From contig OZ241829.1 in NCBI GenBank assembly GCA_965202585.1, positions 66,216,001 through 66,280,000 of the forward strand: 64,000 bases of DNA. The letters are read 5' to 3'. Of this stretch, positions 25,602 through 60,347 are shown piece by piece. Under the pieces are notes generated by a model. It was not told where the DNA came from and did not search any database. It saw nothing but the letters and a program-made list of their open reading frames with translations. This stretch comes from Thalia democratica. Its lineage: Eukaryota. The position numbers were made by a program, and so were the translations under genes. Every line of letters begins with the position of its first letter. The first letter of the stretch is position 1.

Positions 25602-25666
25602 AACTAAATGACCTATGCACGGCAGATATTTTCAACCGAAAAGAACCTAAAAACACATTAAAAAAT

Positions 25667-28126
25667 TTAATTGAAGTACTCCTTCAGGGCTTGCCCGTTC
25701 TTCTTCCACAGCTGGATCTTCAGCCCGATCTTCTCCACGCACTGCTTCAGCTTCCTCTCGCAGTTCTTGCTGATCCTCGGCGTGAGGAACTCCTCCACCT
25801 CCTGCAGCATCTCCTCGGTGGCGAAGTTGGGCGTCGAGGCTTGCACGATCCTCGCCAGGTGGTGGTTCTCGCTGTACTTGTCGTAGAATACCTGCCATTG
25901 CTCCTTCACAAACTTCCACGACTCGTCCCTGCCAAGCTTGGACCTGCTCGCCATTCCTGCCAACATCCTGTACTTTTCGTTGTCTCTCACGTTGTCCGAC
26001 ATCATGTACTCTTGAGCGAGCTTCAAGCACTCCAATTCCTCAACGCACCCCAACGCGCCCTCGATCTCCGTCTTCTCCTCCATTGAATCGGCCTTCTTGT
26101 GCATCTCCACCATCTTGTGGTAAGCATCAACGCCTCCCTTGGCCACGTAAACCTCGTAGACGGGTTGACGAATCTCCGGGTTGATCGGCGTCTGCTTCTC
26201 AAAGAAATCGTTCATGACCTCCATGCACTTTTGGTTGACTCCGTCGTCGTTGGAAGCCGTGATGAGGAGCGCTCTCAAACTTGCGTCCAAGTGGGACTCT
26301 CCCTCCTTTGCTTCCATCCCGACGTGCGCCACGATGTCTTTATACAGGTCTTTTTTGAATTGGGAAAACACTTTCGAAGCTTGTTCGTCGTTCCACAGAA
26401 GCTTGGTCATGGCGCTCATTGACTTGATGATCTCCTTCCACACCGGGTACTCAGTGTCGCCCTTGAAGCGCTTCAGCAGGTCAATGTAGGTGGCGAAGGA
26501 GCATTGGCCGGTGGAGGCCATCGCGTGCACGTCGCTCAAGACGTTGAGGCGGTCAAAGCAGTCGAGCTGTCCGTTTTCGATGGCTGTGATCAGCTTGGTC
26601 AAAATATCTTGGCTGTAGTTCACTCTGTAGAAGCCGCGGAAGCCAGGGTTGACTTTGAACCATTCGTTCGGACCGACGCCTTCCACCGTGATCTGATCGG
26701 ATTTCGATGAAAAGATGAAAGACTGGTGTTCTTCGGAGGTCGACGTGGAGATTGAGAGTGGCACCTGCCACAAGCTGTCGCTGCCTTCATCGGAAGAGGA
26801 GAGGCAAAACTTTTTCTGGGACAAGTTCAACGTCACAGAGTTGTCATTTTGGCTGGCGACGGACACGTTGATGACGGGGAATCCCATCTGCTTGGTCCAA
26901 GTCGACATGACCTGCTCAACAGGCTTGCCGCTGGCGTCCTCAAAACACCTCCACAAATCTTCAGTTTGCGTGTTGGAGTAGGCGTGCTTTTTGAAATAGG
27001 CCTTCATGCCTTGCTTGAACTTTTCCGCTCCGATCCAAAAGTGAATCATCCTGATGATGTTGCCTCCCTTTTGGTAAGATATCGCGTCAAAGATCTCGTC
27101 CACTTCGGCCGGGTGGTTCACCGGAATCTCGATGGCGTGGCTGTTCTTCAGGCTGTCCAGCTCCAGCGAGCGAATGGTGTCGTCATTGACATACTGCTCC
27201 CAAACCTTGAAGTCCGGGTTGCACACGTTTGTTGCGTCATACTCCATGAAGGTGGCGAAGCCCTCGTTGAGCCACAGGTGCGTCCACCACTCCATTGTGA
27301 CCAGGTTGCCGAACCACTGGTGCGACACCTCGTGGCACACCACGATCGTCACCCACTGCTTCTGCGCCTCCGACGACTCCTTCTCGTCGACCAATAATGC
27401 CGACTCCCTGTACGTAATCAGCCCCCAGTTCTCCATGGCCGAGCAGGCGAAGTCGGCGATGGCGATCAGGTCAAGTTTGTTCATCGGGTACGGGCAGTCG
27501 AAGAACTCTGTGAAGTGCTGCACCGACTTGATTGCTACTTCCAGAGGGTACTTTCCCTGGTCGGACTTTCCCGGGGGCGTGTAGACTTTGACGTCGATTC
27601 CGTCCTCGGTCTTGCCCTGGACGTAATCGAACTCTCCCACCACGAAGGCCAGCAGGTAGGTGGACATCTTCTTCGACTTGGCGAACACCACCTTCTTCGT
27701 GACGTCATCCTCGAGAACCTCCTCGCTGACGACGTTCATGTTGGAGAGGGCGACGAGGTCCTTTGGCACGTTCAAAGTGACGTCGAAGGTCGCTTTCAGG
27801 GCGGGCTCGTCCCAGCAGGGGAGGCACTGCCTGGCGTCGGTGGACTCGAACTGGGTGACCAGGTTGTAGCTCTCCACCCCGTCCTTGCTGGTGACTTTGG
27901 TTCGGTAGAATCCAGCCATCTTGTCGTTATGGATACCATTGAAACTCATCTGGAGGACGGCGGGTCCCTGGGGAATGACGTCATCGAACACGAGGGTGCA
28001 GGTTTCTTCCTCCTTGTTCAGGTTGACTTGGGTTGGTACGTAGTTTGTCCCGGAGTGCTGGAGGCTGCACTCTTTGATTTTCAGCTCCTTGCTGTTCATT
28101 TTGATCTCATTAGTGGCTTCATTGAC
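25667..28126 (-). CDS. NPEPPS: Puromycin-sensitive aminopeptidase-like M1 peptidase, copy A, exon 2 (819 aa)
   Basis: Acceptor gaaaacag|GTCAAT at 28127-28128, open to TAA at 25667. M1 motifs: TQFESTDARQCLPCWDEP, KMSTYLLAF, SAMENWG (GAMEN variant), HEVSH-18x-E (CHEVSHQWFGNLVTMEWWTHLWLNEGF), DEIFDAISYQKG (catalytic Tyr). No signal or TM segment, so cytosolic PSA type. Confidence 0.93.
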   Translation of the reverse strand, partial: VNEATNEIKMNSKELKIKECSLQHSGTNYVPTQVNLNKEEETCTLVFDDVIPQGPAVLQMSFNGIHNDKMAGFYRTKVTSKDGVESYNLVTQFESTDARQCLPCWDEPALKATFDVTLNVPKDLVALSNMNVVSEEVLEDDVTKKVVFAKSKKMSTYLLAFVVGEFDYVQGKTEDGIDVKVYTPPGKSDQGKYPLEVAIKSVQHFTEFFDCPYPMNKLDLIAIADFACSAMENWGLITYRESALLVDEKESSEAQKQWVTIVVCHEVSHQWFGNLVTMEWWTHLWLNEGFATFMEYDATNVCNPDFKVWEQYVNDDTIRSLELDSLKNSHAIEIPVNHPAEVDEIFDAISYQKGGNIIRMIHFWIGAEKFKQGMKAYFKKHAYSNTQTEDLWRCFEDASGKPVEQVMSTWTKQMGFPVINVSVASQNDNSVTLNLSQKKFCLSSSDEGSDSLWQVPLSISTSTSEEHQSFIFSSKSDQITVEGVGPNEWFKVNPGFRGFYRVNYSQDILTKLITAIENGQLDCFDRLNVLSDVHAMASTGQCSFATYIDLLKRFKGDTEYPVWKEIIKSMSAMTKLLWNDEQASKVFSQFKKDLYKDIVAHVGMEAKEGESHLDASLRALLITASNDDGVNQKCMEVMNDFFEKQTPINPEIRQPVYEVYVAKGGVDAYHKMVEMHKKADSMEEKTEIEGALGCVEELECLKLAQEYMMSDNVRDNEKYRMLAGMASRSKLGRDESWKFVKEQWQVFYDKYSENHHLARIVQASTPNFATEEMLQEVEEFLTPRISKNCERKLKQCVEKIGLKIQLWKKNGQALKEYFN

Positions 28127-29084
28127 CTGTTTTCAATATTTTGTTGGTTTAGAAGTTTTATTTTTATTAAAGTCATAAGAGGGGTCCATCTTGTTTTCTA
28201 CAAGTTGATCTTGTTCGTGAACTTTTATATAAATTTTCAAACATATTTAATCGCTTAACGAAATTCAAAATTATTTTGATATATAAACAATCAATTTCAG
28301 TTATCTCAACAGGTTCCTATTAGAAGGCACAAACCAAAAACATTAAAAAAAATTAACTCATTAAAAATATATCTTCTCTTTTGTATATTAACTAATCTTT
28401 TTCAAAATTTCACAGTACGTCTATCAATGATATGTCAACTTTTTCAATGCAGGAATTTTTAAAACTTTAAAAATTAAATTTCAAAAAAAATATATGTATT
28501 ACTTGTTCTTTTTATTTTTCTATGTTTTTAAAACTGCAACATTTAAAGGAATATCATGCAACATAAAGGAATGGTTCCTGGAAATTTGAGGTCTCTAGCT
28601 CAAAAAATGAAAACGGTAGATATTTGATCAATTTTTTTATTTTAAATAAAAATTGATGATAAAGCTTACTTTCTATCCCATAATTTTGTATTAGAAACTT
28701 TTTACAAAATTTAGAATAACTAAATATTTTTATTTAATAAGTAATAAGTACAAGCCAGTTTTTAAAAGTTTTAAAAAAAACTTAGGATTTGTTTTTTTAC
28801 AAAAATTAACATTGTTTTTTGTATGAATGCTTTAAGTAATAATACAAGGCAGTTTTTATTAAGGTTTTTATGAAAACCAAAGTTAATTTTTGTATAAAAA
28901 AAATGTTTGTCTCCCCTATGCTCTTAATATTTTATAATATTAGATGAGTTTTATAACTGAAAACTTTATTAATGATTCAGAACAAAAACAATCTTGTATT
29001 ACAAGCTTTAATTAGCAAACACTACAGTGAAGCTTGCCAAATCTTAATGTAGATAAAAACTTTTACAAAAGAAACAAAACTTAC

Positions 29085-29195
29085 AATAATTTCAACAGAT
29101 TGATGCCCTTCAAAAGTGAAAGTTTCAAATGAAGGTGTTAATGTGAGATCATAGTTCATTGGTGTAACATTGGTAGGCAAACGAGAAAATTCCAT
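29085..29195 (-). CDS. NPEPPS: Aminopeptidase copy A, exon 1 (37 aa); intron 28127..29084
   Basis: MEFSRLPTNVTPMNYDLTLTPSFETFTFEGHQSVEII then |gtaagt, phase 0. RLP..V.P.NY.L.L.P....F.FEG is the canonical M1 N-terminus and joins in frame to VNEATNEIKMN. Confidence 0.92.
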
Positions 29196-29657
29196 TGTAG
29201 TTGTTTAATTATTTGTATAAGTCTGTTGAATTATAGTGAATTAAATACATTTATCTTTATACATTAGTTGTTTTATCTATAAAGAGAAAAAAATACCATG
29301 TATTACTAAATTCTGAGTCTTGTTCATCGTACAAAGGAAAATTCACATTTATATACATTTTTATTAAAAAAAATATTTTCACTTATATTACTATCTTAGT
29401 TTTTAAAATACTTACCTAAACTGTGTATTGTTTATATTTAGCAAACACTTACACAATTAATATTTTCTTTTTGCGTTACAACATGATGAAAAATCAAATA
29501 TTACGCACAAATATTTGGTTTACTAGATTTTGAAAATAACATAGCTTAAAATTTTAATTGGTTTAAACTGAACAACAGATCTATTAGATATGTATTACAA
29601 AACAAAATAAACATGTAAAAATATTTTTAATCATCAACTTATCATGATTAGTGTTAT

Positions 29658-30047
29658 CAGGGTTGCCACGGACTTTTGGCAATTTTTTTTAAGGTTTTTA
29701 ATATTTCTTCCAGGTATTTTTAATTACTCGTTTAAAGGTCTATTTTTAGTTCAAATTTAAGTTTAGAAAAAAAAATGTGTTAAATAGTATAAAAGCATTG
29801 AAAAGATACTGTAAAACTTCTTCAAATGTATTTTAAAATTAAAAGATTTTTGATAATTACAAAAAATAATATCTATATTGTACATATTTTATTTCGAATC
29901 ATTTTTTTTACATAAAACAGTTAAAATATCTAAATTTTTTAGAGTTCTAAGTTTTTTAAACTTTATAAGTGTTTTTGTTCAGAATTCCAGGTGTTTTTAG
30001 CCTAAATTGTCAAATTCCTGGTTTTTCCAGGTAAAGTGGCAACCCTG
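29658..30047. mobile_element. MITE with 12-bp TIRs (hAT-like termini)
   Basis: CAGGGTTGCCAC ... GTGGCAACCCTG perfect TIRs with internal ttccagg motifs. No clear 8-bp TSD (flanks tgttat / tgatat). Confidence 0.7.
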
Positions 30048-31199
30048 TGATATACTTATGATATACTTTTCGGTAAAACAAAATAAATAACCAGTAAAAT
30101 GCCAGACTAGGGGTAAGTTAACTGCAGCCAAAGACCCGCATGGAAAAATATGCAGCCTGCAATGTACTTTACAGCTATGAATATAGTTTTACGACCCATA
30201 AGAAATATGGAGTGATTTAAATTACCTATATGGTGTAATTTTATCTTAAACCCACTCCACACTCATAATAATATGAACAACATTAAATGATATCTAAGGT
30301 TACTTTATACAAAACAAGCAAAACAAATGAGTTGATTAATCTTCTAATATATAACCACAATACAATAATATAAGCACTAATTTTTAAATATTAAAACCAA
30401 CTTGTATAAATCACTTTTAGAACAATTAAAAGTTATTGCAAGTTTAAGAGGAAAAACTTAAGGGTATTCAACTAATGTGAAAACATTAAATATTTAAGTC
30501 TTACTCAAAAAAAAATTAGCATGATAGTATTGTTAAGAACTCCTTATACTTTAAAAATGATCAAACAATAGTAAATAAACACGCACAGTTCTTACAAGAT
30601 AAGTCTAGTTATTACTTTAAGCAGGTTCACAATAACAAAACTACAACTGAGCAGCAATATTTTTTTAGTATTTTTGTACTAATTTCACCTACTAGACATA
30701 AAAATGATAAAACAGCAACTGCAAACAACAATTTCATTACACTTTTTCAAAACAATTAAAAACATAAGGATTTTGGTAAAATTTTATAATTAACTTGTAG
30801 CAAAGTAATATAGTAGCAAAACAGCTTAATATTGAGAAAGAAAAATTAACTTGAAGTCACAAGGACAAGTTTTAATCTTATTAAAAAAACCTGAAATTTA
30901 AAAAAAAACAGTCCTGAGTCTCCTTGAGTTTCATCAAAGTTAGTTTTCAAGTGTGCTATAATCACCCACCACTAATTTATGTCCCACATTGTGTTATTTC
31001 TTTTAAATTTTTATTACTAACAAAGTAAAATTTCAACTGGTAAAAAAAGAAAACAAAGTCAATGATTTCAATTATTTTTACAGATGTATAAATCTGGCTG
31101 AAGCATTTTAATTTTGAAACAGGTGGGGATGAGTAAATGGTTTCTCTAAATAACCAGCTAATCAATGTTTTAATATTAAATAAATAATATAAACAAGCC

Positions 31200-33973
31200 T
31201 TGTAGTTTGCCAAATAACCTGAATGATTGGATACTAGCCTGAAATACACCAAGCTAGTCTAAGATGGCCTGGGTCAGCTTGGGATTCATAAGTTTTTTAA
31301 ACTGGTCTAAGTTATCCTGAGTGATTGGCAACTTTTCAATCATATATAACTATTAAAACTATTATTACTATTCACTGAACTCAACTTAACATACTAACTC
31401 ATAACAACATTAGTTTATAAACTCATAAAACAACTTATTTAGAGACTAAAACCATATTTTATTTATATAAAATTCCTTTAATCCTAAACCAGTTTTGCAT
31501 ACTAAGTTGTTATTCCTAGCTTGCTTAGTCACAACTGATTGAAAATAGAATGCATTCTGCTTAAATACAGTTACATTTCCAATATGTTTCTTTGAAAAGT
31601 TCATAATTAGTTCTTTTGAAAATAATAAAAACACTTAGTAAGCTGATATATATTTTATCAAATTCAATCTAAGTTGCCAAAAACCAGTTTAGTAAGAATT
31701 CAGTATAATTGATTACATTAAAAAAATTAATTTATTCTATAAAAATAAAAGTTATGTAGCATGATCATTTTTTCAAGAAAGTCTTAGAAAACCAACTATA
31801 GGACCGGAAAAACCAGCTTGAGTGACTTTTAACTAATACAAGTTATTTTAAATAGTCTCAAAAAAAAAGCCATAATAGGACCCGAAGACAAAAAAAAAAC
31901 TGTTACTTCTAATTTGTCAAAATAATATGAATAAAACTTAATAGAAACACAGTTTTAAAAAAATGGACATTAACTCAAAAACTAGCTTAAGATTGTGGAA
32001 AAACTTGGAAAATAGCATAAACTTTGCCACAAAAATTTCAAACAAGCCTGAGTCAGCATGAGTAGACTGAATGCATTGCAACCCTGATGAGATCACCAAG
32101 TATTTTTCAAATAAATTTAAACTTTTTTTACTACAACAAAATTACATATATATTATTTGTATTAATAACAAATATTTGAAAACTATAACCCCACTGGTTT
32201 TGGACTACTTAACATGATTTTAACTTCTCATTAAAAATTAATAACCTACTTTATGCTATTTTATAACTACCAAGCACAAACAATACTTCTATAGTAGAGA
32301 TAAATACACACAAAAATATTATAGTACTTGTATACTAAATACATGAATTAATTTAGAATTCAAAGTGAAAAGAACTAGAACCTAAATAATATAGTTAAGT
32401 TTAAGTAAAAGGACATAAAAACATAATAAACTAAAATGAGAATGAACTTTTTAAATCTAAATTACAAACACTTATTGGAAACAAGTATTGTTATAAAGCA
32501 TTTAAAACAACAATAAGTTCACTTACTCAAACTTCCTAATATATTAGAACTGTCTGTTGAAAGGTTTTGACTAAAATGTTAAAACTTTCAGTTCTAATGA
32601 GCTTATATAGGCTTTAAATGAGAATGAAATTTTAATAGAAACATTGCATCAGGCAAATGTATGTAGTTTTAAGTAATTTGATATGTAATTTGAACTAATT
32701 AGATTATCTTTCTTTATTTGACTATCTCTCTTTATTTGATTGTCTCTCTTTATTTTATTTTCTTTGCTCATGCTCTCAATTTTCTCGCACAAGCTTTAAT
32801 TGGAGTTTTTTAAACTCAACTCTGCTTAAAGTTATTGATTTTATTACGAACAAAATAAACTTGTTATAAATTTTACAAAAGTGTTATTAGGTTAAGTGTT
32901 TTTATAATTTAAGTACAATAAGCTCATCGAGCTTAAAGAAAGCAAAAAGATAACAGTAGCTTGAGTACATTGAGTTAAGAGAATGTAATGAGATTAAGCT
33001 AGGAGCTTTTATAAAACTTGATACAGTAGATCTATTACCAATTACTAAGCTAATAACTTTGAAAAAAATAAGCTTATAAATAAGCATGACTTGTTAAACA
33101 ATGAGGTTATAAATTTTTAAACTAAGAACCAGACTTACTTATCTGTTTTAACATGCTTACATAAACTGATTAACTAAAAAAATATTATAAACAGATCAAC
33201 ATCTGAAAACTAGCAACTTTAAAGATTTTTGAAAATGCTAAGTAAAAATTTTATTTATTAAACTTAAAAAATACCTAAAAGCTTTTTTTTTTGCTAACTT
33301 AACAATGATTTTTGTTTAACTTACAAATTAAAAACAAAAACATTAAAACAACTATAAATTAAATATCATAAACAGATCAACATCTGAAAACTAGCAACAC
33401 TAAAGATTTATGAGAATGCTAGGTAAAAAATATTATTTGTTTAACTAAAAAAATACCTAAAAGCTTTCTTACTTTTTCCAACTTAAATCCAAGAACATTC
33501 CCTAATCTATAATTCCATTTAAGTTTAATTTAAATTTCTGAATGTAACTAGATAATAATATTATAGTTTTATGTAAGCCTTAAAACTTAACAACATTGTT
33601 TAGGTAGCAAAAAGAGTTAATGTTTAAAATAAAATCACATTGAAGTGACAAAGACAACTATTATTAAATTTAAATAAAAAAACAAAATCAGCCAGAGTTA
33701 TGAAAAAAAACTGCATACACACTTGAGTCACATGAGTTTTACCAAAATTCTGGTTTATAATGAGCTTTTTTCATAGTCAGCTACAAATTGCCCAGTATCA
33801 ACTTATTTCCCACAGAGTGGTTAATTTTTATAAGTGTCAAGTCTAAAAGTTCAACTAGTAAAATTGAAAAAATAAAACTAGTGATGTATATGAATATATA
33901 TATATATATATATATATTAATTTAGTTTTTTTATTTTAAATCTAATATTTAGTATAAGGAAGCATTAATACAG

Positions 33974-34010
<37 letters not shown>

Positions 34011-36150
34011 ATATATTTTCCCACCTGTTTTAAAATTAAAGAAAATCTAAATAGCTAGCTAATAAGTATTGCAATATTAAAACTTTGCAAAATAACCTGA
34101 GTGATCAAATACTAGCTTGAATTACAAGCTAGTCTAGCATGGTCTGAGTTTGTCAAAAAATTAAAAAAGTATTAGCCATAATTGTAAAGTGATATTAATC
34201 AAGCTTAAAAATTAAAAATGCTAAATAATACCAATTGAAGGACTTAACACAAACACAACTTTTTAATAGATTCATAAAATTAAAAAATTAGCCTGAATTT
34301 AGTAACATTTAATAACCTTATTATGTACTTTATCAAAGTTAATCAAAGATGCCACTTTTAACATAAAAAGTATTTTTCCAGTTAAAAAGTTAAGCATAAT
34401 TAATTTTTCAATATAAGAATACCATGTTTTTTTTTATTCAAAATAGGTTAATTATAACTAATTCAATATCTATTTACTGATAAGAGTTATGTAGCATGGT
34501 AATTTTTTCAAAAAAGTCTTAAAAAGTTGACATAAGGACAGAAAAAAAGCCAGCTTGAGTGAGTGAAAACTTATCTGATTATACAAGTAAGCCTGAAAAA
34601 TATAATAATTCAAAAGCTGAAAAATAGAGTTAGTCTAAAATTATCAAAAAAATAAGAAATACTTACCAACAACACATTAAAAAAAAAATTTTACTTAAAA
34701 ACTAGCTTAAGATTGTGGAAAAACTTAAAAATTAGAATAAACTATGCCATAAAAATTTCAAACAAGCCTGAGTCAGCATGAGTAGCCTGAATGCATTGCA
34801 ACCCTAAGAAGAACACCAAGTATTTTAAATAAAGTGAAACATATTTTATACTTTACCAATTACATAAATATCATTTGTATTAATAACAAATATTTGAAAA
34901 CTATAACCCCACTGGTTTTGGACTACTTAACATGATTTCAACCTATCATTATAAATTAATAACATACTTTATGCTATTTTATAACTACTAAGGACAAACA
35001 ATACTTCTATAGTTGATAAATACACACAAAAATATTATAAAACTTTTATACTAAATATATGAATTAATTTAGAATCCAAATTGAAAAGAACTAGAACCTA
35101 AATAATATAGTTAACTTTAAGTAAAAAGTTAAAAAAAAACATAATAAACTAAATAGGAATGAACATTTTAAATATAATTACAAAAACTTATTGGAAATAA
35201 AAATTGTTATAAAGCAATTAAAACAACAATAAATTCACTTAATCAAACTTCCTAATATATTAGAACTGTCTGTTGAAAGGTTTTCACTAAAATGTTAAAA
35301 TTTTCAATTCTACTGAGCTTATATAGGCTGTAAATGAGAATGAAATTTTAATAGAAACATTGCATCAGGCATAAGTATGTAATCTTGAGTAACTTGATAT
35401 GTAGTTTGAACTAATTAGATTATCTTTCTTTATTAGATTATCTCTCTTTATTTGATTGTCTCTCCTTGTTTTTTTTCTATGCTTACTCTCGCAATTTTCT
35501 CACCTAAGCTTTAATTGGAGTTTTATTAACTTAACTCTACTTTAAGTTATTGTTTTTTATGGCGAACAAAATACACTTGTTATAAACTTTACAACAAGTG
35601 TTATTAGGTTAAGTGTTTTTTAAATTTAAGTACAATAAGCTCATCATGCTTAAAGAAAGCAAAAAAGAAAACAGTAGCTTGAGTACATTGAGTTAAGAGA
35701 ATGTAATGAGATTAAGCTAAGAGCTTTAATAAAACTTGATACAATAGATGTATTACCTATCAGTAAGCTAATTATCCAAATAACATTAAACTAAAACCTT
35801 TAATAAAACTAGATACAATAGATGTATTACCTATCAGTAAGCTAATAACTTTGAAAAAAAAAGCTTATAGATATGCATGACTTGTTAAACAATGAGGTTA
35901 TAAATTCTTAAACTAAGAACCAGACTTATTTATTTGTTTTAATATGCTTAAGGAATCTAGTTTCATAAAAAAGATTAAAACATAAACTGGTTAACTAAAA
36001 AAATATTATAAACAGATCAACATCTGAAAACTAGCAACACGAAAGATTTTTGAAAATGCTAAGTAAAAATATTATTTGTTTAACTAAAAAAAATACCTAA
36101 AAGTTTTTTTTTTGCCAATTTAAGTAATGCTTTTTGTGCAACTTACAAAT
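31200..36150 (+). repeat. Tandem segmental duplication, units ~31200..33480 and ~34090..36150 (offset ~2.7 kb)
   Basis: Colinear shared blocks, e.g. attaataacaaatatttgaaaactataaccccactggttttggactacttaacatgattt at 32161 and 34879, and aaacaagcctgagtcagcatgagtag at ~32040 and ~34760. The sub-repeat acagatcaacatctgaaaactagcaac occurs three times (~33191, ~33372, ~36011). Confidence 0.85.
33894..34007. repeat. Two (TA)n microsatellites between the duplicated units
   Basis: (TA)n runs at 33894..33917 and 33974..34007. Confidence 0.9.
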
Positions 36151-42079: not shown

Positions 42080-43737
42080 ATGGTAAAAAATGCAGTTTAG
42101 TATAATAAAAGCGGAGACATTTTTCAAAAGTTTTTCTCAATGTAGAGGTGTTATTAACAACGTCATTAAGAGTTATCAAGAGAATTACGAAACCATAAAA
42201 TCAGATTAAAAGAATACACAAAAGTTAATTGAAAAGGCTAAAAAGCTTTATGGTTATGACACTGCTTATCTGAAATAAAACCTTTCTTCCAGGCTTCAAA
42301 GACAAACTTGAGTTGTTGAACGACAATTGCCCTGATCATAAGATTTCGAAAAACTCCATCATTGGAAGAGACAATATGAAAGAAATAATATTTTGGTCAC
42401 AACTAGAACTCTTAGATGACTCCAAAAGTGTTAAAATTTACAGAGTCGGCTCATCTGACATGCTTGCGGCAGATTCTAGCCTTTTTGAAAGCTCGCAAAA
42501 AAAATTCTGTTACACGAAACTTCGGTAAAAAAGTAGAAGGGATCTTGAAAACAGGGTTCAAACCTTCGCGAAATGAATAATATGGTCCCGTGGTGTATAT
42601 CTCTAGTAGTATTAAAACCGAACACGAAGATAACATTTGTTATGCCCAAGTTCAACTGTTGTTATAAACTCTTATACTTTTTTGTGAACCATAATTCCAA
42701 GCGAATATGCACCAGCCTAAGATTTGAAAGCAAGTACTACATGTTTGAAGGTTATCTCAAGAACGGAGCTTGCAAGTTGTGCACGTCAACAAAATGTTCA
42801 AGGTTCCGGGCACTTTTCAGGACTGCCCGAACAACAAGTTTGACGGGAAGGAAAACTCTAAACGGAACTTTTCACAGGGACGGTACCTTGAACGAAGTTG
42901 TCGCCCATCACGACCTCGTGCGACCCGCTGGAAACCGCCAAGAAACCGGTGATGAGTGAAATTGTGGACCAGGTGGTTGGCAACGGCTTTCCTGGAAAAA
43001 GATCTTAAAGGTATTTCTTCCGGCACGTAAAAGATCAAAGCAAGTTCGCCACTTTGACTCGTTAACGAGAGAGGTCGGGAGGAAAATAGCCGGTTGGAAG
43101 CTGGAGCACAGCGTGGTTGTTTACAGTCCGCTCGAAGAGGAAGTGGAACGCGCCGTGAAGCAGCTTTCATTTCAACTTGGCAGCCTTTTTGAACCGAAGG
43201 ACGATGCAAAGTACAGGACGGAGCCTTTGCAGGAGCAAGACGATGACTACCAGTTTGTCATAAATTTTTTCGATAAGAATAAAAAAGTAAAAAAGATATA
43301 AACCAGATTCATCAAAGTTAACCCCGTCAACAAAAGTGAAGAACTCGGTTTAAAGGACAAATGTTGTTTTCCGTGAAGTTTAATCAAACCAGCGCAGCAA
43401 TGTTCTGACAAACGGTTATTTCAAAGTCTGCAAAACAGAAAATACGAGCTGCGAACCTATTTGCGCCACGACAAACTTTGAAGCTCAAAAAGAAGACGGT
43501 GCAAGTTGTTGCATGGACGGCATCGTACCGAGAAAGCTCTCGTTTGTCGTCGTTGCAAGCACGGGAGCGAATCACGAAGAATTTCGGGTGGAAGGCAGCG
43601 AGTTTGTGAGAGGCAGCAGGGGAAGTAGCTTCGATGCGGGTGAATTGACTGTCGGAAGAGCTGAGGTTGGTGAGAGGAAAAAAAATTGCCAAGTTATAAG
43701 AGATTTTATAGAACCATTTATGCTCCGGCAAAACTGA
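42080..43737 (+). pseudogene. Decayed gene with two tandem PARP-like (ARTD) ADP-ribosyltransferase domains
   Basis: Reconstructed across frameshifts and stops. Domain 1: VKIYRV ... L-H-E-T-S-V-K-/K-V-E-G-I-L-K-T-G-F-K-P-S-R-N-E-*-Y-G-P-V-V-Y-I-S (42510-42605) ... KLLYFFVN ... GTLNEVVAHHDLVRP (~42885-42930), matching HGT..GF..YG.GVY..NE.V. Domain 2: PLQEQDDDYQFVINFF..VKKI, QMLF..NVLTNGYF, KLSFVVVAS..FIEPFML (more degenerate). Confidence 0.55.
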
Positions 43738-45139
43738 TCATCTTTAAGTTAAAATGAAAGTACAAATAACTCGTATATTTTGTTCTTAGGGATGGGTATA
43801 AGCATAAATTGGTTTTGATACCAGTTTACAAAATAAAAATAAGATCTATTGATAAATTTCTCTACTTTATGTTTGGTTTGATATTAAATTTCTCATCTAG
43901 AAAAATTTTATACACTTCTTATAAATTGTTTTCGATTTTTTAATTATTCTTAAAAATTTATAAACTTATTTAGCTTTCAGCATGATATTCTAGCTAGATT
44001 ATATTACTATAAAAGTTGTTATATAAAAAAAAACCATATTGTGGTAATTTTTATTTTAATTTTAATAAAGGTTCTTATAGTTTTTATTTAAAATAAAATA
44101 TTGAAGGTCGTTGTGAAAATAAACCATTTTATAATTTTTTTAATTTAAAATATGACACTTGTGGTATTGCTTATTTGCTTCAGTCACAGTTGCCAGAATT
44201 TTATAGCTATTTTTGCCCTTATATAATTTTTAATGAAAACTTGACATACAAAATATTTTAACCGTTTGGTATCTCCCAAGAGCTAAGTTTGACTTACTTT
44301 GAATATCAATGAATGCTTAGCTTACTATTAAAAAATTATAGTATAGTGCTTTTCTCACAAATTTAAAGTTTATGAATGTAAACTTTTTCATTACTAAATA
44401 CTTAAACTAAAGCCGTTGCATTAGAGCAGAGCAAATTCCTTTACTGTTTTTTAGTTGATTGAAAAGCTACTTTCAAAAATTATAATTTTTTGTTTTTAAA
44501 ACTAATAATTATTTCTAAATGGAGAATTTTGTGAGTTCGCACATTCGGTTAAATGTGCAAGTTATGAGTTTGCACTGCTGCTTAAGTTTGCATTTTAAGA
44601 AATTGTGTTAATAGTATTTTTTCTATTTTTTGCTAAGTAAATATAACTTGAAAACTTTTTTATAAATGTAGTTATTTTTAATTCATTAACTTCTATTTAA
44701 TATACTTGAACGAAATATATTAAAAAATATTATGATACAATGCAAAAATTACATTAACATTAAATGGTCTAATCAACAAAAACCATTCGCTAGTTTGCAG
44801 TTTTAGCGATATTTTAAAACTAAATTTATATAAGTTATCAATACTTATGCTTTTAAAAACAAAAAATTCCCTAAATACTTTTGTTTCTTTATTAAAAACT
44901 TACCTTATTTGTAAAAAATATTGCATTCAATGTTTACATTTTTATCAATACCTAAACTATTTTATATTACCTTTAACATTTATAAGCTTTCAGTAAAAAA
45001 ATAAGGCTTTTTCATAGTTAACATTTTTATAACATGTGAAACTCATGTAAAAGTTTTAAATGGTTAACTTTGAAAAAAAACTGTAAATTAACCCTATAGA
45101 CAGAAAATATATTTAACAACAACAGTATATATAGAAGAA

Positions 45140-52600: not shown

Positions 52601-53130
52601 ACCATTTTTGTAATACTACGTATTTATATATTATCGATTTAGCTTTAAAATACTATAAAACTTAAAATTTAGACGTAATATTTAAACTATTTTGTTATAA
52701 GACTAGTTATGTGGTAAAAGGTGCAAAAACTAGTAAACGGTAATATGAACTTAATAAAAGCTTAACAAAAATCTTAAATAAATAAAATATAAATAATTCA
52801 CAAAGAATATTTAATAGATAAACTTTTGTTTACAAACAATTTGTTGTAGTTGTATTGTATTATTTTTATCTTAATAATTTAATTTGAAAGATCCCAAGCT
52901 AAGGGATTCTCAAAATACTTGTAAATCTCCGCACCAATTTACGAATAAACCACGCGTCGCAACTGAAGTCTAATATACATAAAACTAACAAATGGTGAAA
53001 TGTCATTTTCACATAAGCTATCAACTTAATCATAGTTAATGGCAAAAGATAAAGACGTTTTTTAAGCTAAAATAAAACAACTAACACAGAAAATGTCAAT
53101 TTAAAACAATTATACTCTAACGTACTATAA

Positions 53131-53260
53131 ACGGGAAAGGGTCAAATATGCACGAAGAGACACTTTTGCACAATTTTTTTTTTGCACGAAGATAATTTTT
53201 CACGAAGACACTTTTGCGCGAAGACCATTTAGCACAAGGGGAAGTTTTTGCACGGCGGTT
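53131..53260. mobile_element. Left-end fragment of the TTGCACGA MITE family
   Basis: acgggaaagggtcaaatatgcacgaag followed by about six ttttgcacgaag-type units, matching the left end at 12623. Confidence 0.6.
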
Positions 53261-53637
53261 TACAATCTGTATATTGGATTTGGCCCACAAAGCAGAAACT
53301 TCTTTGGCGTTCGTTGTAAATTTATCTTGAAAACAACTAAAATACATTTACCTTTTCGCTTGTGTTTTTAATTAAGTTTTCCGTAAACAATACTTATTGA
53401 AAGTTATTATTTCAATATAACCATTTGTTTAAAGATTTGAAAAGTATATACGGCACAGTTCTTTTAAAATAAGGAAGCTTGCTAAGATTTCATTTTTAGT
53501 ATGATCGACTGAAAAGGATGTTATAATAAGTCTAACCCATCGACTAGAAAAGTTTTCTATCCATATTATTGGTAATAAAAGAATAATAGAACATTATATC
53601 AAAGTGTAATTTAGCATAATTTCTTTTTTTAATAAAA

Positions 53638-53685
53638 GGACCCGTATTTGGCCGGATCTTAATTAAAAAAAATAAATACGGGTCC
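53638..53685. repeat. 12-bp perfect inverted repeat with 24-nt spacer in a GGATCC-rich patch
   Basis: ggacccgtattt (53638..53649) and aaatacgggtcc (53674..53685); further ccggatcc and ggatccgg motifs extend to ~53870. Confidence 0.7.
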
Positions 53686-54648
53686 GACCTGAAACTTTCT
53701 GGATTACTGGGTAACCATTTGATTTCTGGGTAACTTTCTGGATGCAGTAGGATCACTATTTTAGTTAGAGCTTAATTATGCCTTAATTATTTTACAACTT
53801 TTAAATTACCCGGATCCCATCGGACCTCAGTTGAACAACAACACCTGGATCAACTTTGGATCCGGTTATCACTTATCACAAAAAAAACTATTTAAGTAAA
53901 AAAAGAAAGTTAAACTGTTATCAGTGGAAGTAAATCAGCTATATAACTTGTTAATAATGTTAATGACATATTTTTGATTTTTAAATAAATGTTTTGTTTA
54001 TGCAGGCAAGGTTTTTTTTTGAATTTTTTTTTTATCTCAACTTTCTCTAATCTGCGTAAAAGTATATATTTTGTGATTTTAGGTTGTGTTTGGCTTCTGC
54101 AAAATATCTCCCAAGTTAAAAGTGTATCTCTTGTTCGTATCTTTCAAGTGCCATGTAAAATTTGACAGCTCTGTGCTAAATTTGTTTGAAAAATAAAGTT
54201 CTGATCTATTTAAAATCTCAATAGAATCCGACAAACTTTTATAAGTTACGATTTCAAAGTCTTTCGCAGGACATCGTGTTTTTGTAAGTTTAAAAACATA
54301 ACTAGTTTTTGTTGAGTTGTGTTAAAAATTTCATTAAATAAATTACAAATTTGCTAAACTATAGCTAATTTAATAGCATGTTTAAAATTTTGACTACTAA
54401 AATAGATAATTGTTTTGAAAAAGTTCTAAAAATTAGAAAAACATATTAATACATATGTCGGAATTTTTAGCGAATTTCTTTAAAAAGTATATATAGTTTA
54501 TTGAACGACTAAAAATACGCTCAAAATATTTGGTCTTCAGACTAGGTGCACAAAAAAAAATTTCGGTTGTCGAGTCGCACACCACGCATACCTTTTACGT
54601 CTTGTCCAGGACTTCGAACTACGCATTAATTGAAATATTCGTTTAATC

Positions 54649-54765
54649 CAGGGATCGGCAACATATTGCCCTCAAACAGTAAATCTACGGCCTGCGAATA
54701 TACTTTTATTTTTAATGGGATGCGGACCGTCAAAGGTAAGTTGTGTTGCCCGCGAGCATGTTGAT
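54649..54765. mobile_element. hAT-like MITE fragment
   Basis: CAGGGATCGGCAAC start followed by cggcctgcga, tgcggaccg and gcccgcgag motifs, as in CAGGGGTCGGCAAC..CGGCCCGCG-type hAT non-autonomous elements. Confidence 0.4.
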
Positions 54766-56981
54766 CAAGCACACTAAAAATTATTTTGTAATTTGTTTTT
54801 TTAGTTATAGTCTTGTATTCAGACTTATTCCATTTTTTGTACCTGATAAAAAGTACTCTACTAGTTTTATTGCAAAGTTAAAAACACAGATTGTCTTTTT
54901 CTGAGTATTTATTCACAGTAAAAACATCAGGGCCTTTTTTTACATCTGTAAGTTTTAGCTAGTTAAAACTATGAAATGCTTTTTTATCTTTGGTTGTTCT
55001 TCAATTTTTTACATATTGAATAATTCTTATTAATGCATATTATAGTAGTTTCCAATGTAAACTAAGCTTTGCACAGTAATTAACTAAAAAGTTAGTTCTT
55101 ATCACACTAAGTGTTTTGTTAAGCAACTAATTTACATGTAACTTTCCATCATATAAGTTTTTTCGCTGCATTTTGTAATTGGTTTTTAAAGAAACAAGAT
55201 TAAACAGCCGTTGCCAGTAGCAGTCGAGTAATTTTCATGAAAAATAGTCCTAAAAATTAATAAACCTCTACGACAAGCTTTTGGAAGTTTTTCTTATAAT
55301 TTTGAAAAATGTTTTTATACTTGTGAAACCGTTTGTTTGTTTTTCTTGCAAAATAAGTTTTGCTTTAAAGTTACTATATGTAAAATCAACTTTCGTACGT
55401 TATTAATTGAAACGTTGATTAAATTTGATAAAACACGTTTTTAGATTACTAAATAGTATTAAGTGTTGTTCATTAAATGGAAATAATTATGAACTTTAAT
55501 AAGAAGTGTACTGGTAATGAAACTGCATTTACTCAGAAGATATTCCTTAAAATTAGTTAGTTGTAAAAAAGCCAGGAGTAGTAACAGCTTAGGATAAGAA
55601 TCAACAGTTGGCAACTAATTATTACAGGTAGAATAAAAACAGCTTATGTGATATTTTAAATAAGGCTGATGTTAAAATAATTGTGGTAGTCTTTTGTAAA
55701 AGTACTACTTTAAACCATATATAAACAAGCAACAATAAAGTTCTTATAGATGCTAACACTTAAATAAATAGTCTATTTATAAGTTTTTACCATAATTTAT
55801 AATTTTAATGTTTTGAAATAGCGTAATGAAACTGTTGTCTTCGCATGCTGTATAACAAAAATATAAATAATACACCATAAAGTTTTATTTCATTTAATGA
55901 AATCCACACTTAGCCTATCAAAGCAATTGTTAATAAAACAAAAGTTTGCACCTCTCTTGAAATCCAAAAAAAATTCCTTAAATTCATTTAGACTGCCCAT
56001 AATATCATGATTCAATAATGAAACTAACTTTCTAAACATGCTGTTTCATTGTTTAGAAAGTCTATTTAGGTGGTCTAGTACATAAATACTATGAAGTATT
56101 ACTACTCAGTTGTTATTGTGAACCTGCTTAAAATTATAATCAAATCTATCTTATAAATACGGTGCTTGTTGATTTACTATTTTTTTTTTTTTCTTGAAAT
56201 ATTAACACTTTTTAAGTAAGTTCTGAATTTGTTTTTCTGTTAGTCTATATTTTGAGATTTAATTGTTCTAAAAGTAATTTACACAAGTTGTTTTATTTTT
56301 TAATACAGCCATTATACAATTTTGTCGTGGTTATATAATAAAAGACTCATTTACTCATTTGCTTTTCCTAGTTTATATAAAATAACTTAAGTATCTTGTA
56401 GTATTATTCAGATGTAGTTTCAACTCAACTTTCTTTAATACCATGCAAGACAAGCTTAATCTTAGGTTTAACAATGTAGAAAGAAAAATCTTTTTGTACA
56501 CAGAAACAACTTATATTAAAAATATTATTTTCACACGTATGCTCACTTGAATTAAATGCTCAACTTGGTAGCCCATATACTGTATTCAATCAAATGCATC
56601 ATAAGAAAACCGCTAATATAGTATGTTTAGTAGCTACATCTCATATTAAGTTCTCTCGTTTAGCTACGCTTTTTTGCTGCGGACACAATGTGGGTGTAGA
56701 TTCGTGAGAGGTGACTGTAATATTATTTTGTAATATAACTATAAAATAGTCGAGTGCTTTTTATTAAATACAAATGTAGAAACAAGGGCAAAAATCTCGC
56801 CGTAGTTAATAAAAATATATTTAATTGTGAATTTTTAGATGACGAACAAGTACGTTTTTGGTTTCAATTTTACAGTGTAAATTATGTTTGTTATATAAAA
56901 AACTGTATTCAAAATTAATACTTTTAACAATTGTAACTCTGCAGACTTATATAAATAACTAAAATAACTAAAACAACTACA

Positions 56982-57092
56982 ATGGAATTTTCTCGTTTGC
57001 CTACCAACGTTACACCAATGAACTATGATCTCACATTGACACCTTCATTCGAAACTTTCATCTTTGAAGGACATCAATCTGTTGACATTATT
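56982..57092 (+). CDS. NPEPPS: Aminopeptidase copy B, exon 1 (37 aa); intron 57093..57878
   Basis: MEFSRLPTNVTPMNYDLTLTPSFETFIFEGHQSVDII then |gtaagt, phase 0; 7 of 111 nt differ from copy A exon 1. The track ORF start at 57840 lies in the intron. Confidence 0.92.
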
Positions 57093-57878
57093 GTAAGTTT
57101 TTACTTCACTAGTTATTTTTATACATTTTGTAAATTTTTCTTTATCTGCTGAAATGTAGCTAAGCTTTAAAGCCTCAATAAATTATTATTTAAATTGTCT
57201 TAAATTTTTATAAGTGAGCATCTTTAACATACAAAAGTTAAATGTTTTATTTTCAAAAAAATGCTCCGCTCAAAAGAGATCATCAGGTAATTATGCAATC
57301 AGGATAATCAATTTATAAAATTTTCCTTAGCAATACGTTAAGATCCTTTATTGTTATCTTTATAGATATAAGTTAATATAACTATGGATTTTATTAATGT
57401 TATTTATTATAGAGTGAAGCAATTTTTGTAAATAACTTGGTAAGTCAATAAGTCGTTAGTCATAACACCTATTTACAACAAATTTATACCCAGTCGTATT
57501 GTAATGTCCCCAATTTTAAGTAAGCATCGTAAGATAACTTTTTAATGTTAATTTTAAATATTTAATTTTGATTTTAAACAGATGTCTTAAGTTACAAAGC
57601 AGGGTAGCTACAAAAGCGTGCAACCAATTTACATATCTGCTTAACTTGAATAATTTTTTAGTGTTTATTTTCATGTTATTTTTAATTTTAATTATATAAA
57701 AAAAAATTATTTTCTTACATGTTTGGGTTGATAAAATAAGGTATATAAAATATGCAAGCTAAGCAAATATGCAAGTTAGTTGTAGTTTTTGAAGTTACCA
57801 ATGAAGTATTCACAACTAAGACTTGCAGAAGTATAAACGTTGCAAATCAGTAAAATGTTAAAACATTACACTAAACAG

Positions 57879-60347
57879 GTCAATGAAGCCACTAATGAGA
57901 TCAAAATGAACAGCAAGGAGCTGGAAATCAAAGAGTGCAGCCTCCAGCACTCCGGGACAAACTACGTACCAACCCAAGTCAACCTGAACAAGGAGGAAGA
58001 AACCTGCACCCTCGTGTTCGATGACGTCATTCCCCAGGGACCCGCCGTCCTCCAGATGAGTTTCAGTGGTATCCATAACGACAAGATGGCTGGATTCTAC
58101 CGAACCAAAGTTACCAGCAAGGACGGGGTGGAGAGCTACAACCTGGTCACCCAGTTCGAGTCCACCGACGCCAGGCAGTGCCTCCCCTGCTGGGACGAGC
58201 CCGCCCTGAAAGCGACCTTCGACGTCACTTTGAACGTGCCGAAGGACCTCGTCGCCCTCTCCAACATGAACGTCGTCAGCGAGGAGGTTCTCGAGGATGA
58301 CGTCACGAAGAAGGTGGTGTTCGCCAAGTCGAAGAAGATGTCCACCTACCTGCTGGCCTTCGTGGTGGGAGAGTTCGATTACGTCCAGGGCAAGACCGAG
58401 GACGGAATCGACGTCAAAGTCTACACGCCTCCGGGAAAGTCCGACCAGGGAAAGTACCCTCTGGAAGTAGCAATCAAATCGGTGCAGCACTTCACAGAGT
58501 TCTTCGACTGCCCGTACCCGATGAACAAACTTGACCTGATCGCTATCGCCGAGTTCGCTCACGAGGCCATGGAGAACTGGGGGCTGATTACGTACAAGGA
58601 GTCGGCATTGTTGGTTGATGAGAAGGAGTCGTCGGAGGCGCAGAAGCAGTGGGTGACGATCGTGGTGTGCCACGAGGTGTCGCACCAGTGGTTCGGCAAC
58701 CTGGTCACAATGGAGTGGTGGACGCACCTGTGGCTCAACGAGGGCTTCGCAACCTTCATGGAGTATGACGCAACGAACGTGTTCAATCCGGACTTCAAGG
58801 TTTGGGAGCAGTACGTCAACGACGACACTATTCGCTCGCTGGAGCAGGACATCCAGAAGAACAGCCACGCCATCGAGATTCCGGTGAACCACCCAGCAGA
58901 AGTGGACGAGATCTTCGACGCGATATCTTACAAAAAGGGAGGCAACATCATCAGGATGATTCACTTTTGGATCGGAGCGGAAAAGTTCAAGCAAGGCATG
59001 AAGGCCTATTTCAAAAAGCACGCCTACTCCAACACGCAAACTGAAGATTTGTGGAGGTGTTTTGAGGACGCCAGCGGCAAGCCTGTTGAACAGGTCATGT
59101 CGACTTGGACCAAGCAGTTGGGATTTCCCGTCATCAACGTGTCCGTCGCCAGCCAAAATGACAACTCTGTGACTTTGAATTTGTCCCAGAAAATGTTTTG
59201 CCTCTCCCCTTCCGATGAAGGCAGCGACAGCTTGTGGCAGGTGCCACTCTCAATCTCCACGTCGACCTCCGAAGAACACCAGTCTTTCATCTTTTCATCG
59301 AAATCCGATCAGATCACGGTGGAAGGCGTCGGTCCGAACGAATGGTTCAAAGTCAACCCTGGCTTCCGCGGCTTCTACAGAGTGAACTACAGCCAAGACA
59401 TTTTGACCAAGCTGATCACAGCCATCGAAAACGGGCAGCTCGACTGCTTTGACCGCCTCAACGTCTTGAGCGACGTGAAAGCGATGGCCTCCACCGGCCA
59501 ATGCTCCTTCGCCACCTACATTGACCTGCTGAAGCGCTTCAAGGGCGACACCGAGTACCCGGTGTGGAAGGAAATCATCAAGTCAATGAGCGCCATGACC
59601 AAGCTTCTGTGGAACGACGAACAAACTTCGAAAGTGTTTTCCCAATTCAAAAAAGACCTGTATAAAGACATCGTGGCGCACGTCGGGATGGAAGCAAAGG
59701 AGGGAGAGTCCCACTTGGACGCAAGTTTGAGAGCGCTCCTCATCACGGCTTCCAACGACGACGGAGTCAACCAAAAGTGCATGGAGATCATGAACGATTT
59801 CTTCGAGAAGCAGACGCCGATCAACCCGGAGATTCGTCAATCCGTCTACGAAGTTTACGTGGCCAAGGGAGGCGTTGATGCTTACCAAAAGATGGTGGAG
59901 ATGCACAAGAAGGCAGATTCAATGGAGGAGAAGACGGAGATCGAGGGCGCGTTGGGGTGCGTTGAGGAATTGGAGTGCTTGAAGCTCGCTCAAGAGTACA
60001 TGATGTCGAACAACGTAAGGGACAACGAAAAGTACAGGATGTTGGCAAGAATGGCGAGTAGGTCCAAGCTGGGCAGGGACGAGTCGTGGAAGTTTGTGAA
60101 AGAGCAGTGGAAGGTGTTCTACGACAAGTACAGCGAGAACCACTACCTGGGAAAGATCGTGCAAGCTTCGACGTCCTGCTTCGCCACCGAGGAGATGCTG
60201 CAGGAGGTAAAGGAATTCCTCACGCCGAGGATCAGCAAGAACTGCGAGAGGAAGCTGAAGCAAAGCGTGGAGCAGATCAGGCTGAAGATCAAGAAATGGA
60301 AGAAGAGCGGGCAAGTCCTGAAGAAGTACTTAAATCGTATAGCTTAA
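57879..60347 (+). CDS. NPEPPS: Puromycin-sensitive aminopeptidase-like M1 peptidase, copy B, exon 2 (822 aa)
   Basis: Acceptor ctaaacag|GTCAAT, open to TAA at 60347. Same M1 motifs as copy A with EAMENWG, HEVSH-18x-E and DAISYKKG; about 95% amino-acid identity to copy A by manual count. Confidence 0.93.
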   Translation, partial: VNEATNEIKMNSKELEIKECSLQHSGTNYVPTQVNLNKEEETCTLVFDDVIPQGPAVLQMSFSGIHNDKMAGFYRTKVTSKDGVESYNLVTQFESTDARQCLPCWDEPALKATFDVTLNVPKDLVALSNMNVVSEEVLEDDVTKKVVFAKSKKMSTYLLAFVVGEFDYVQGKTEDGIDVKVYTPPGKSDQGKYPLEVAIKSVQHFTEFFDCPYPMNKLDLIAIAEFAHEAMENWGLITYKESALLVDEKESSEAQKQWVTIVVCHEVSHQWFGNLVTMEWWTHLWLNEGFATFMEYDATNVFNPDFKVWEQYVNDDTIRSLEQDIQKNSHAIEIPVNHPAEVDEIFDAISYKKGGNIIRMIHFWIGAEKFKQGMKAYFKKHAYSNTQTEDLWRCFEDASGKPVEQVMSTWTKQLGFPVINVSVASQNDNSVTLNLSQKMFCLSPSDEGSDSLWQVPLSISTSTSEEHQSFIFSSKSDQITVEGVGPNEWFKVNPGFRGFYRVNYSQDILTKLITAIENGQLDCFDRLNVLSDVKAMASTGQCSFATYIDLLKRFKGDTEYPVWKEIIKSMSAMTKLLWNDEQTSKVFSQFKKDLYKDIVAHVGMEAKEGESHLDASLRALLITASNDDGVNQKCMEIMNDFFEKQTPINPEIRQSVYEVYVAKGGVDAYQKMVEMHKKADSMEEKTEIEGALGCVEELECLKLAQEYMMSNNVRDNEKYRMLARMASRSKLGRDESWKFVKEQWKVFYDKYSENHYLGKIVQASTSCFATEEMLQEVKEFLTPRISKNCERKLKQSVEQIRLKIKKWKKSGQVLKKYLNRIA

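Follow-up and report, generated by a model that had tools for sequence, protein, structure and literature searches.

An inverted pair of M1 aminopeptidase genes in Thalia democratica, one copy of which carries a rare variant of the GAMEN motif

A 64,000-nucleotide stretch of the genome of Thalia democratica (assembly GCA_965202585.1, contig OZ241829.1, positions 66,216,001 to 66,280,000 of the forward strand; here called the window) contains two divergently oriented genes of the M1 zinc aminopeptidase family, named copy A and copy B. Judged from sequence, both are intact two-exon genes, and their products are predicted to be cytosolic and similar to puromycin-sensitive aminopeptidase (PSA). 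The exopeptidase motif, GAMEN in its canonical form, reads SAMEN in copy A and EAMEN in copy B. This difference is real and statistically non-random, and the pair represents ordinary divergence of paralogs with one rare motif variant. Sequence comparison indicates that only copy B is derived, and that copy A keeps the consensus of its subfamily under strong purifying selection. Copy B is probably a folded, still constrained but relaxed paralog with a rebuilt S1 entrance, that is, a diverging redundant duplicate and not half of a dedicated two-enzyme system. What is new is a variant within a known enzyme family.

Gene models and active-site features

The window has a GC content of ~22-27%, with two GC-rich blocks of ~2.5 kb each. 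Together they form an inverted repeat (25645-28132 versus 57873-60360, 96% complementary), in which each arm is the large second exon of one aminopeptidase gene. Both genes are intact and built alike, with 37 codons in exon 1, an intron in phase 0 bounded by GT..AG, and an exon 2 of 2.46 kb. The minus strand carries copy A, whose product has 856 aa, and the plus strand carries copy B, whose product has 859 aa. The features of the two genes, in positions of the window, are as follows.

29085..29195, minus strand: copy A exon 1; 37 codons, begins MEFSRLPTNV, AT-rich codon usage, GC content at third codon positions (GC3) 22%
28127..29084, minus strand: copy A intron; 958 nt, phase 0, no alignment with the copy B intron
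25667..28126, minus strand: copy A exon 2; 819 codons and stop, GC 54%, GC3 81%, Pfam domains Peptidase_M1_N, Peptidase_M1 and ERAP1_C
27428..27454, minus strand: copy A exopeptidase motif DFACSAMEN (residues 262-270), from translation; identical to the family consensus
27263..27334, minus strand: copy A zinc site HEVSH-x18-E (residues 302-325), from translation
27143..27166, minus strand: copy A LELDSLKN (residues 358-365), from translation
27065..27085, minus strand: copy A AISYQKG with catalytic Tyr388, from alignment to human PSA
56982..57092, plus strand: copy B exon 1; 37 codons, a metatranscriptome contig joins 57092>57879 with GT..AG ends
57093..57878, plus strand: copy B intron; 786 nt, 68% alignment with the intron of the environmental contig L031
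57879..60347, plus strand: copy B exon 2; 822 codons and stop, GC3 78%, the same three Pfam domains as copy A, a shifted stop adding 3 residues
58551..58577, plus strand: copy B motif EFAHEAMEN (D262E, C265H, S266E); base changes in 58553-58564, sequence unique in the genome
58671..58742, plus strand: copy B zinc site HEVSH-x18-E, intact, from translation
58839..58862, plus strand: copy B LEQDIQKN (L360Q, S362I, L363Q); B-type letters here are present in contigs of run X1
58920..58940, plus strand: copy B AISYKKG, Tyr388 intact, Q389K, from translation

Copy A has the donor GTAAGT at 29084 and the acceptor CAG, and splicing of exon 1 to exon 2 in the copy A type is seen in an RNA-run contig and in the spliced environmental protein P0125, both from relatives. 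Copy B keeps the start context, the GTAAGT donor, the acceptor and an AATAAA signal ~65 nt past the stop, and has zero stops or frameshifts across its 859 codons. In both copies the three Pfam domains score far above the cut-offs, and the domain architecture (Pfam) and fold (AlphaFold2) of an M1 peptidase are found.

The two motifs that had been read from the DNA in an earlier note, DFACSAMEN on the minus strand and EFAHEAMEN on the plus strand, were confirmed by translation. The note had also described ~140 identical residues ahead of the motif; the identity holds, and the unbroken run measures 161 residues (101-261). Further differences behind the zinc site, LELDSLKN versus LEQDIQKN at residues 358-365 and SYQKG versus SYKKG at residues 385-391, are as described there. 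The zinc site of the gluzincins (HEXXH-x18-E, MEROPS M01) occurs in both copies as HEVSH-x18-E, and Tyr388 in AISY(Q/K)KG, which aligns with the Tyr of AISYSKG in human PSA, is likewise present in both, in agreement with the note. Both copies retain the Met-Glu-Asn core of the exopeptidase motif, as AMEN followed by W, and the Glu that partners it from the N-terminal domain (QFE, residues 129-131). The Gly expected of M01 peptidases at the first GAMEN position is replaced by Ser in copy A and by Glu in copy B, and neither copy is canonical, as had been stated.

Human PSA does read DFAAGAMEN at the aligned site. Residue 265 (Cys in A, His in B) corresponds to its Ala315, and residue 266 (Ser in A, Glu in B) to its Gly316, which places the differences in the loop shaping S1, as the note had held. 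In human PSA, Ala315 lines S1 and corresponds to EcPepN Met260 and LTA4H Tyr267; Gly316 starts the GAMENW edge strand that runs alongside the substrate, and Glu319 and Glu180 bind the substrate N-terminus (PMC10343166). The residue preceding the GAMEN Gly is named as a variable determinant of S1 specificity in a passage of PMC6222927 that cites Dalal 2013, and in IRAP the residue G428 matters in substrate and inhibitor binding (PMC2604898). The S1 entrance of copy B would be bulkier and charged. AlphaFold2 models of exon 2 of the two copies have the same fold, with a mean predicted local distance difference test (pLDDT) of 84-85 and a predicted template modelling score (pTM) of 0.85 each. The copy B model finds its best match by E-value in the PSA structure 8SW0 (E 5e-65, template modelling score (TM) 0.84), and matches closed ERAP1 with a TM of 0.90.

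The SAMEN subfamily in the genome and the environment

Relatives were searched in the genome (802 Mb). A tandem array on C10 (8.92-9.20 Mb, loci L003-L023) contains 21 intact copies with a single large exon at ~12-13 kb spacing, together with two broken fragments. The two array members that were compared are nearly identical (0.006 synonymous substitutions per synonymous site, dS, and 0.001 non-synonymous substitutions per non-synonymous site, dN), which represents a very recent amplification or ongoing homogenisation. Other subfamily copies and pseudogenes are found on C2, C5 and C6, and related pseudogenes on C2, C10 and C5. At least 24 intact SAMEN-type copies exist in the genome, and the family comprises ~25 copies. 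DFACSAMEN is present in all 21 intact C10 copies and in both C2 pseudogenes, and the copy at C6:45.97 reads DFSYSAMEN. SAMEN is also found in 23 environmental proteins, mostly from marine metagenome assemblies, and most environmental relatives have DFACSAMEN exactly. A motif common to the C10 paralogs, the two pseudogenes and most environmental relatives is taken as the ancestral state of the family.

The genome also holds canonical GAMEN genes, a point that the earlier note had asked to be checked. Three multi-exon PSA-like genes are located at C9:18.82, C2:23.74 and C5:49.32 Mb, with up to 83% identity per exon to tunicate PSA, and the few-exon gene C6:46.19 carries DFPIGAMEN. With SAMEN family-wide and canonical GAMEN genes elsewhere, copy A represents the norm of a large lineage-specific subfamily. 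A maximum-likelihood tree unites the SAMEN proteins on a long stem, with 100/100 support. C6:46.19 belongs to the GAMEN group that is sister to them, and the two groups together make up a separate clade, likewise with 100/100 support, which leaves out the canonical PSAs of animals, tunicates included. Compared with 105 canonical PSAs, the SAMEN clade has 35 fixed replacements at columns conserved at 93% or more, including G266S and the change of HELAH to HEVSH. Copies A and B do not group with the canonical animal PSAs and are not the PSA representatives of this genome, and hence are not NPEPPS orthologs; their best named relatives are tunicate PSAs. The SAMEN subfamily, a lineage-specific group defined in this analysis, is marked by two exons, DF-x-x-S-AMEN and HEVSH. 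Copy A shows all three marks; copy B shows the exon structure and HEVSH, with Glu in place of Ser.

The rarity of the two motifs, on which the earlier note had wanted an alignment, proved unequal. Among 320 motif instances in the 316 homologs fetched, the Gly position holds G in 292, S in 23, L in 3, F in 1 and E in 1; SAMEN is the rule in its subfamily, and EAMEN is found once. The lone Glu belongs to a fish protein (Aplochiton, P0165). EAMEN as a conserved feature of a fish APN-like clade was considered and rejected, as it is a singleton among ~119 relatives. Of 221 catalytic-domain columns compared in the SAMEN clade, residue 265 (C, Y, L, H) ranks in the 11 with the most variation, and none of the 197 homologs tallied at this position has His.

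Two side observations concern the same loop. The environmental relative P0011, 71% identical to copy A, has the loop TDSEFAMEN, shorter by one residue, in which Phe takes the Gly position and Glu precedes it; this may be another sign of a hot spot for loop change in the clade, or a broken copy. In gymnotiform fishes, SAMEN or SGMEN is found in otherwise intact proteins of the membrane alanyl aminopeptidase-like b type (P0252, P0266 and P0269). The gymnotiform Ser and the Aplochiton Glu variants indicate that substitution of the GAMEN Gly also arose independently among vertebrates.

Polarity and asymmetry of the changes

The second exons of A and B differ at 87 base positions, scattered over the whole exon; 40 codons differ non-synonymously, including the lost stop codon of B, and 44 synonymously. 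The differences were polarised with an environmental sister sequence and the C10 copies. Derived residues number 26 in B and 7 in A, with 7 ambiguous. At the codon level, 24.8 synonymous and 31.2 non-synonymous changes fall to B, against 15 and 3 to A. Over ~495 synonymous and ~1962 non-synonymous sites, the ratio of non-synonymous to synonymous rates (omega) is ~0.31 for B and ~0.05 for A (Fisher p=0.006), and the branch lengths in the tree are 0.040 and 0.004. Copy B nevertheless remains below the neutral expectation, with 31 of 56 changes non-synonymous versus 80% expected (p=3e-5). Seven of its replacements lie at near-invariant columns, including D262 (100% conserved), R277 (99%), L363 (98%), K476 (95%) and L360 (92%). 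The dS values against the C10 paralogs are saturated by the shift in GC3 (proportion of differing synonymous sites, pS, 0.79), and therefore no omega is given for deeper branches.

The earlier note had proposed a sub- or neo-functionalised pair of enzymes. As a special two-enzyme system the pair is not supported: the motif of copy A is the ancestral state of the 21 paralogs and of the relatives, and only B is derived. Because it has kept the subfamily consensus under strong purifying selection, copy A would most likely be a working broad-specificity aminopeptidase like its many paralogs.

The compound motif change in copy B

From A to B, the motif codons GAC TTC GCC TGC TCG have become GAG TTC GCT CAC GAG. 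Seven base differences are found in the motif stretch, six of them within 12 nt (58553-58564). Six are derived in B and one in A, the latter being the silent change of Ala264 at 58559. Given the density of changes in the B lineage, six changes in 12 nt have a probability of ~1e-4, two triple-hit codons of ~1e-5, and five or more multi-hit codons of ~0.006. Every multi-hit codon is non-synonymous, and the motif changes are not of the GC-to-AT type that dominates the rest of B.

A donor paralog for a micro-conversion of the motif was sought and rejected, as the 27-nt B sequence is single in the genome at three or fewer mismatches, and the window holds no local template of 8 nt or more. The clustering, together with the lack of donor and template, points to a multi-nucleotide mutation that was tolerated or favoured, or to repeated selected substitutions. 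No exact match to the B motif pattern was found in metagenome contigs of the Joint Genome Institute (JGI), the exact A and B proteins have no record in protein look-ups, and a protein search with the motif region gave no B-like protein.

Support from reads

Reads were consulted as Logan contigs of four public runs; in such contigs near-identical paralogs collapse and one variant branch is dropped, and they are no reliable guide to depth, strand or absence. In run X1, which carries the same organism label and matches the stretch best, the copy B intron is matched exactly, and the exon contigs have ~2x the intron depth and are A/B mosaics, as expected of collapsed paralogs. At 59194, at 60048 and over 58783-58855, a segment that spans the LEQDIQKN cluster, X1 shows the letters of B at a depth close to that of a single copy. 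The LEQDIQKN cluster is thus independently supported, and in this part the check on reads suggested by the earlier note had a positive outcome; at the motif itself, the Logan contigs carry A-type letters only. Two metatranscriptome runs contain spliced SAMEN-type sequence from a close relative.

Run X3, from a differently labelled organism, was compared over 56982-60400. The copy B intron is found at ~97% identity, and the exon-2 contigs, at 3-4x the intron depth, are A-type at 42 of the 44 covered sites at which A and B differ. The rapid change in B may therefore be confined to the lineage that was assembled.

History of the pair and base composition

The inverted unit extends over ~25553-31675 and 60460-55411 and includes the regions upstream of both genes.

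29196..31675, minus strand: copy A upstream region; patchy homology (70-79% identity) to 55411-56981, part of the inverted duplication unit
55411..56981, plus strand: copy B upstream region; diverged counterpart of the copy A upstream region

Identity between A and B is 95.4% in exon 2 and 70-79% in the upstream and 3' flanks (78% in the 3' untranslated region), with introns that cannot be aligned, and drops sharply at the borders of exon 2. The dS is 0.09 between A and B, and 0.32-0.35 between either copy and the environmental sister. The intron of the sister contig L031 aligns with that of B and not with that of A, and its 3' flank is 88% identical to A and 75% to B. Depending on whether the intron, the exon or the 3' flank is compared, A, B and L031 are related in three different ways. 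The much lower identity of the flanks (70-79%) makes it probable that gene conversion homogenised exon 2 at an earlier time, and the locus as a whole would represent an old inverted duplication with later conversion limited to this exon. Strong constraint on synonymous sites is an alternative to gene conversion.

A strong GC3 contrast exists inside one gene, with 78-81% in exon 2 and 22-32% in exon 1, in flanks of ~24% GC. Among paralogs, GC3 is 0.89 in the environmental sister, 0.81 in A, 0.78 in B, 0.45 in the C10 array, and 0.39 and 0.27 in two C6 copies. After the split, changes from GC to AT versus the reverse number 43:6 in B and 14:4 in A. The GC-rich state of the exon is therefore now decaying.

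The fate of copy B

The most probable explanation can be outlined as follows. A and B are the two arms of an old inverted duplication of ~5-6 kb, with one two-exon gene each, and both genes belong to a lineage-specific subfamily that has Ser for the Gly of GAMEN. At the coding level, B split from A recently (dS 0.09), probably after exon 2 had been homogenised. Since this split, the B protein has changed four to ten times faster than A. The residues of the S1 entrance have been rewritten jointly in B, from Cys265, the naturally variable S1 residue, to His, and from Ser266, at the Gly position, to Glu, with all catalytic residues and the start, splice and poly(A) signals retained. The altered entrance should shift or narrow the P1 preference, or lower the general activity.

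Several results weigh against a functional rebuilding of B, and the explanation just given overlaps with two outcomes, gain of a new function and decay. It is possible, though we regard it as doubtful, that B was neofunctionalised by positive selection, with His265 and Glu266 together with L360Q, S362I and L363Q selected for a new P1 or P1' specificity, such as basic N-terminal residues, while A and the other paralogs kept the general activity. The improbable cluster at the S1 entrance, the excess of multi-hit and triple-hit codons, the purely non-synonymous nature of the multi-hit codons, which are unlike the GC-to-AT bulk of B, and the lack of a donor or template all favour this outcome, as do the intact reading frame, an overall omega below 1, and the precedents of laeverin and the variable S1 residue for control of specificity at these positions. 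However, the omega of the whole branch is 0.31 and not above 1, multi-nucleotide mutation events can mimic a clustered pattern, and several of the replacements fall on structural columns that hardly vary. Glu at the Gly position has practically no precedent, its one other instance not being common to the orthologs of that fish protein. The B state was seen in no other sample examined: the metatranscriptome data of both runs are A-like at the B-derived sites that they cover, and so is every one of the 12 proteins in the nearest 90% cluster. The modelling proposed in the earlier note yielded intact M1 folds and did not discriminate the pockets; confidence at the motif is alike in A and B (pLDDT 66 and 67, residues 221-230 of exon 2). 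A slide of redundant B towards loss of function is likewise possible, to a limited degree: relaxed constraint would let damaging changes persist, among them one complex mutation of the motif, and the open frame would be temporary. The replacements at the 95-100% conserved columns D262, R277, L363 and K476 fit such a relaxation, as does an omega raised ~six-fold relative to A. The more than 20 paralogs provide redundancy, with pseudogenes already present on C2, C10 and C5. Of the 56 changes in B, 43 run from GC to AT, and its GC3 is below that of both A and the environmental sister. The A-like states in the metatranscriptome runs and the protein cluster are in line with decay as well. Against it stand the non-synonymous changes, far below the neutral share, the lack of stops or frameshifts in 859 codons with splice, start and poly(A) signals intact, and the chemically conservative nature of D262E and R277K.

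Two further explanations are much less probable. EAMEN could be an error of assembly or consensus at a locus that is truly SAMEN like A. In each of the four runs, including the best-matching X1, the sole contig over 58544-58619 has A-type letters, a further result that does not favour the motif in B, and the B pattern is absent from JGI metagenome contigs and protein databases. Yet contigs of this kind drop variants, those of X1 are mosaics at about doubled depth, and B-type letters at roughly single-copy depth do occur elsewhere in the exon. Six in-frame substitutions are atypical of long-read error, and the 87 differences between A and B are spread across the exon; we therefore consider an artefact improbable. 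The idea that A and B form a co-regulated, purpose-built system of two enzymes with complementary specificities draws on the head-to-head orientation and on the concentration of differences near the active site, and is very improbable. The motif of A is indistinguishable from those of 21 paralogs elsewhere, and the sampled relatives show the A-like type only. A shared bidirectional promoter was rejected, because the start codons lie 27.8 kb apart. The spacer between the genes contains no open reading frame (ORF) of 110 aa or more except for short frames in a low-copy GC-rich repeat.

Comparison with known enzymes and significance

PSA (NPEPPS, MEROPS M01, human structure 8SW0) shares with A and B the four-domain architecture without signal peptide or membrane anchor, as well as HEXXH-x18-E, the exopeptidase Glu and Asn, the catalytic Tyr and the QFE of the N-terminal domain. 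Human PSA is their closest solved structure (E 1e-215, ~41-46% identity) and the best Foldseek match. Unlike PSA, A and B belong to a clade outside the canonical PSAs that is set apart by its fixed replacements, two exons and ~25 copies. Laeverin (aminopeptidase Q, HXMEN) resembles B in having a bulky polar residue at the GAMEN Gly in an active M1 enzyme, and the part of PMC6584185 that cites Maruyama 2009 attributes its distinctive specificity to this His. Laeverin is nevertheless a membrane-bound placental enzyme of the APN group, with His where B has Glu, the His of B standing one residue earlier; the comparison is an analogy only and no relatedness is claimed. The variable S1 residue (EcPepN Met260, PfA-M1 Val459, LTA4H Tyr267, PSA Ala315), which lines the entrance to S1 and tunes P1 specificity, aligns with residue 265, at which the His of B is, unlike the known variants, absent from the homologs tallied; an effect of this His on specificity is a prediction. 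Fish alanyl aminopeptidase-like b proteins (SAMEN, SGMEN, EAMEN) also have the Gly replaced in otherwise intact M1 enzymes, in a different subfamily, the membrane APN group. The fish EAMEN stands alone, being absent from its orthologs, and is therefore no sign that an enzyme can keep working over the long term with Glu at this site. The peptidase is not mentioned in any of the 12 best-ranked of 204 papers that touch on at least two of the subjects salps, Thaliacea, puromycin-sensitive aminopeptidase and gene family expansion.

M1 aminopeptidases are drug targets (ERAP1/2, IRAP, APN, PfA-M1), and the GAMEN loop is regarded as nearly invariant. Here, a whole expanded subfamily has Ser fixed at the Gly position and is still under strong purifying selection, and one young copy has Glu and His. 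B may have been recently neofunctionalised, with Glu for the supposedly obligatory Gly and a His gate to S1, within this ~25-copy SAMEN-type PSA subfamily; we put this forward tentatively. If true, such a series of natural variants, with G, S and E in turn at the Gly position and A, C/Y/L and H at the gate, would show how the loop can be rebuilt to alter P1 specificity. If both A-type and B-type enzymes are active, they would be natural variants for probing the control of P1 specificity by the loop. If B is merely decaying, the finding is ordinary. The locus also represents a clean case of asymmetric divergence after duplication, in which probable gene conversion is combined with a GC3-rich exon, out of equilibrium, set in AT-rich DNA.

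Other features of the window

A comparison of the window with Rfam gave no match. Three minor observations were made outside the two genes. A direct duplication in the spacer between A and B (32140-35475) consists of segment pairs of 178 and 300 nt, 91-92% identical, at a spacing of ~2717 nt. A GC-richer island at 42601-43800 (up to 52% GC), near the symmetry centre of the inverted duplication, has no convincing ORF; it resembles ~6 other genome sites at ~65-67% identity, which suggests a low-copy dispersed element. A second GC-rich island (61301-62000), ~1 kb downstream of copy B, has overlapping low-complexity ORFs on both strands and practically no counterpart elsewhere in the genome; a single weak match on C6 is partial.

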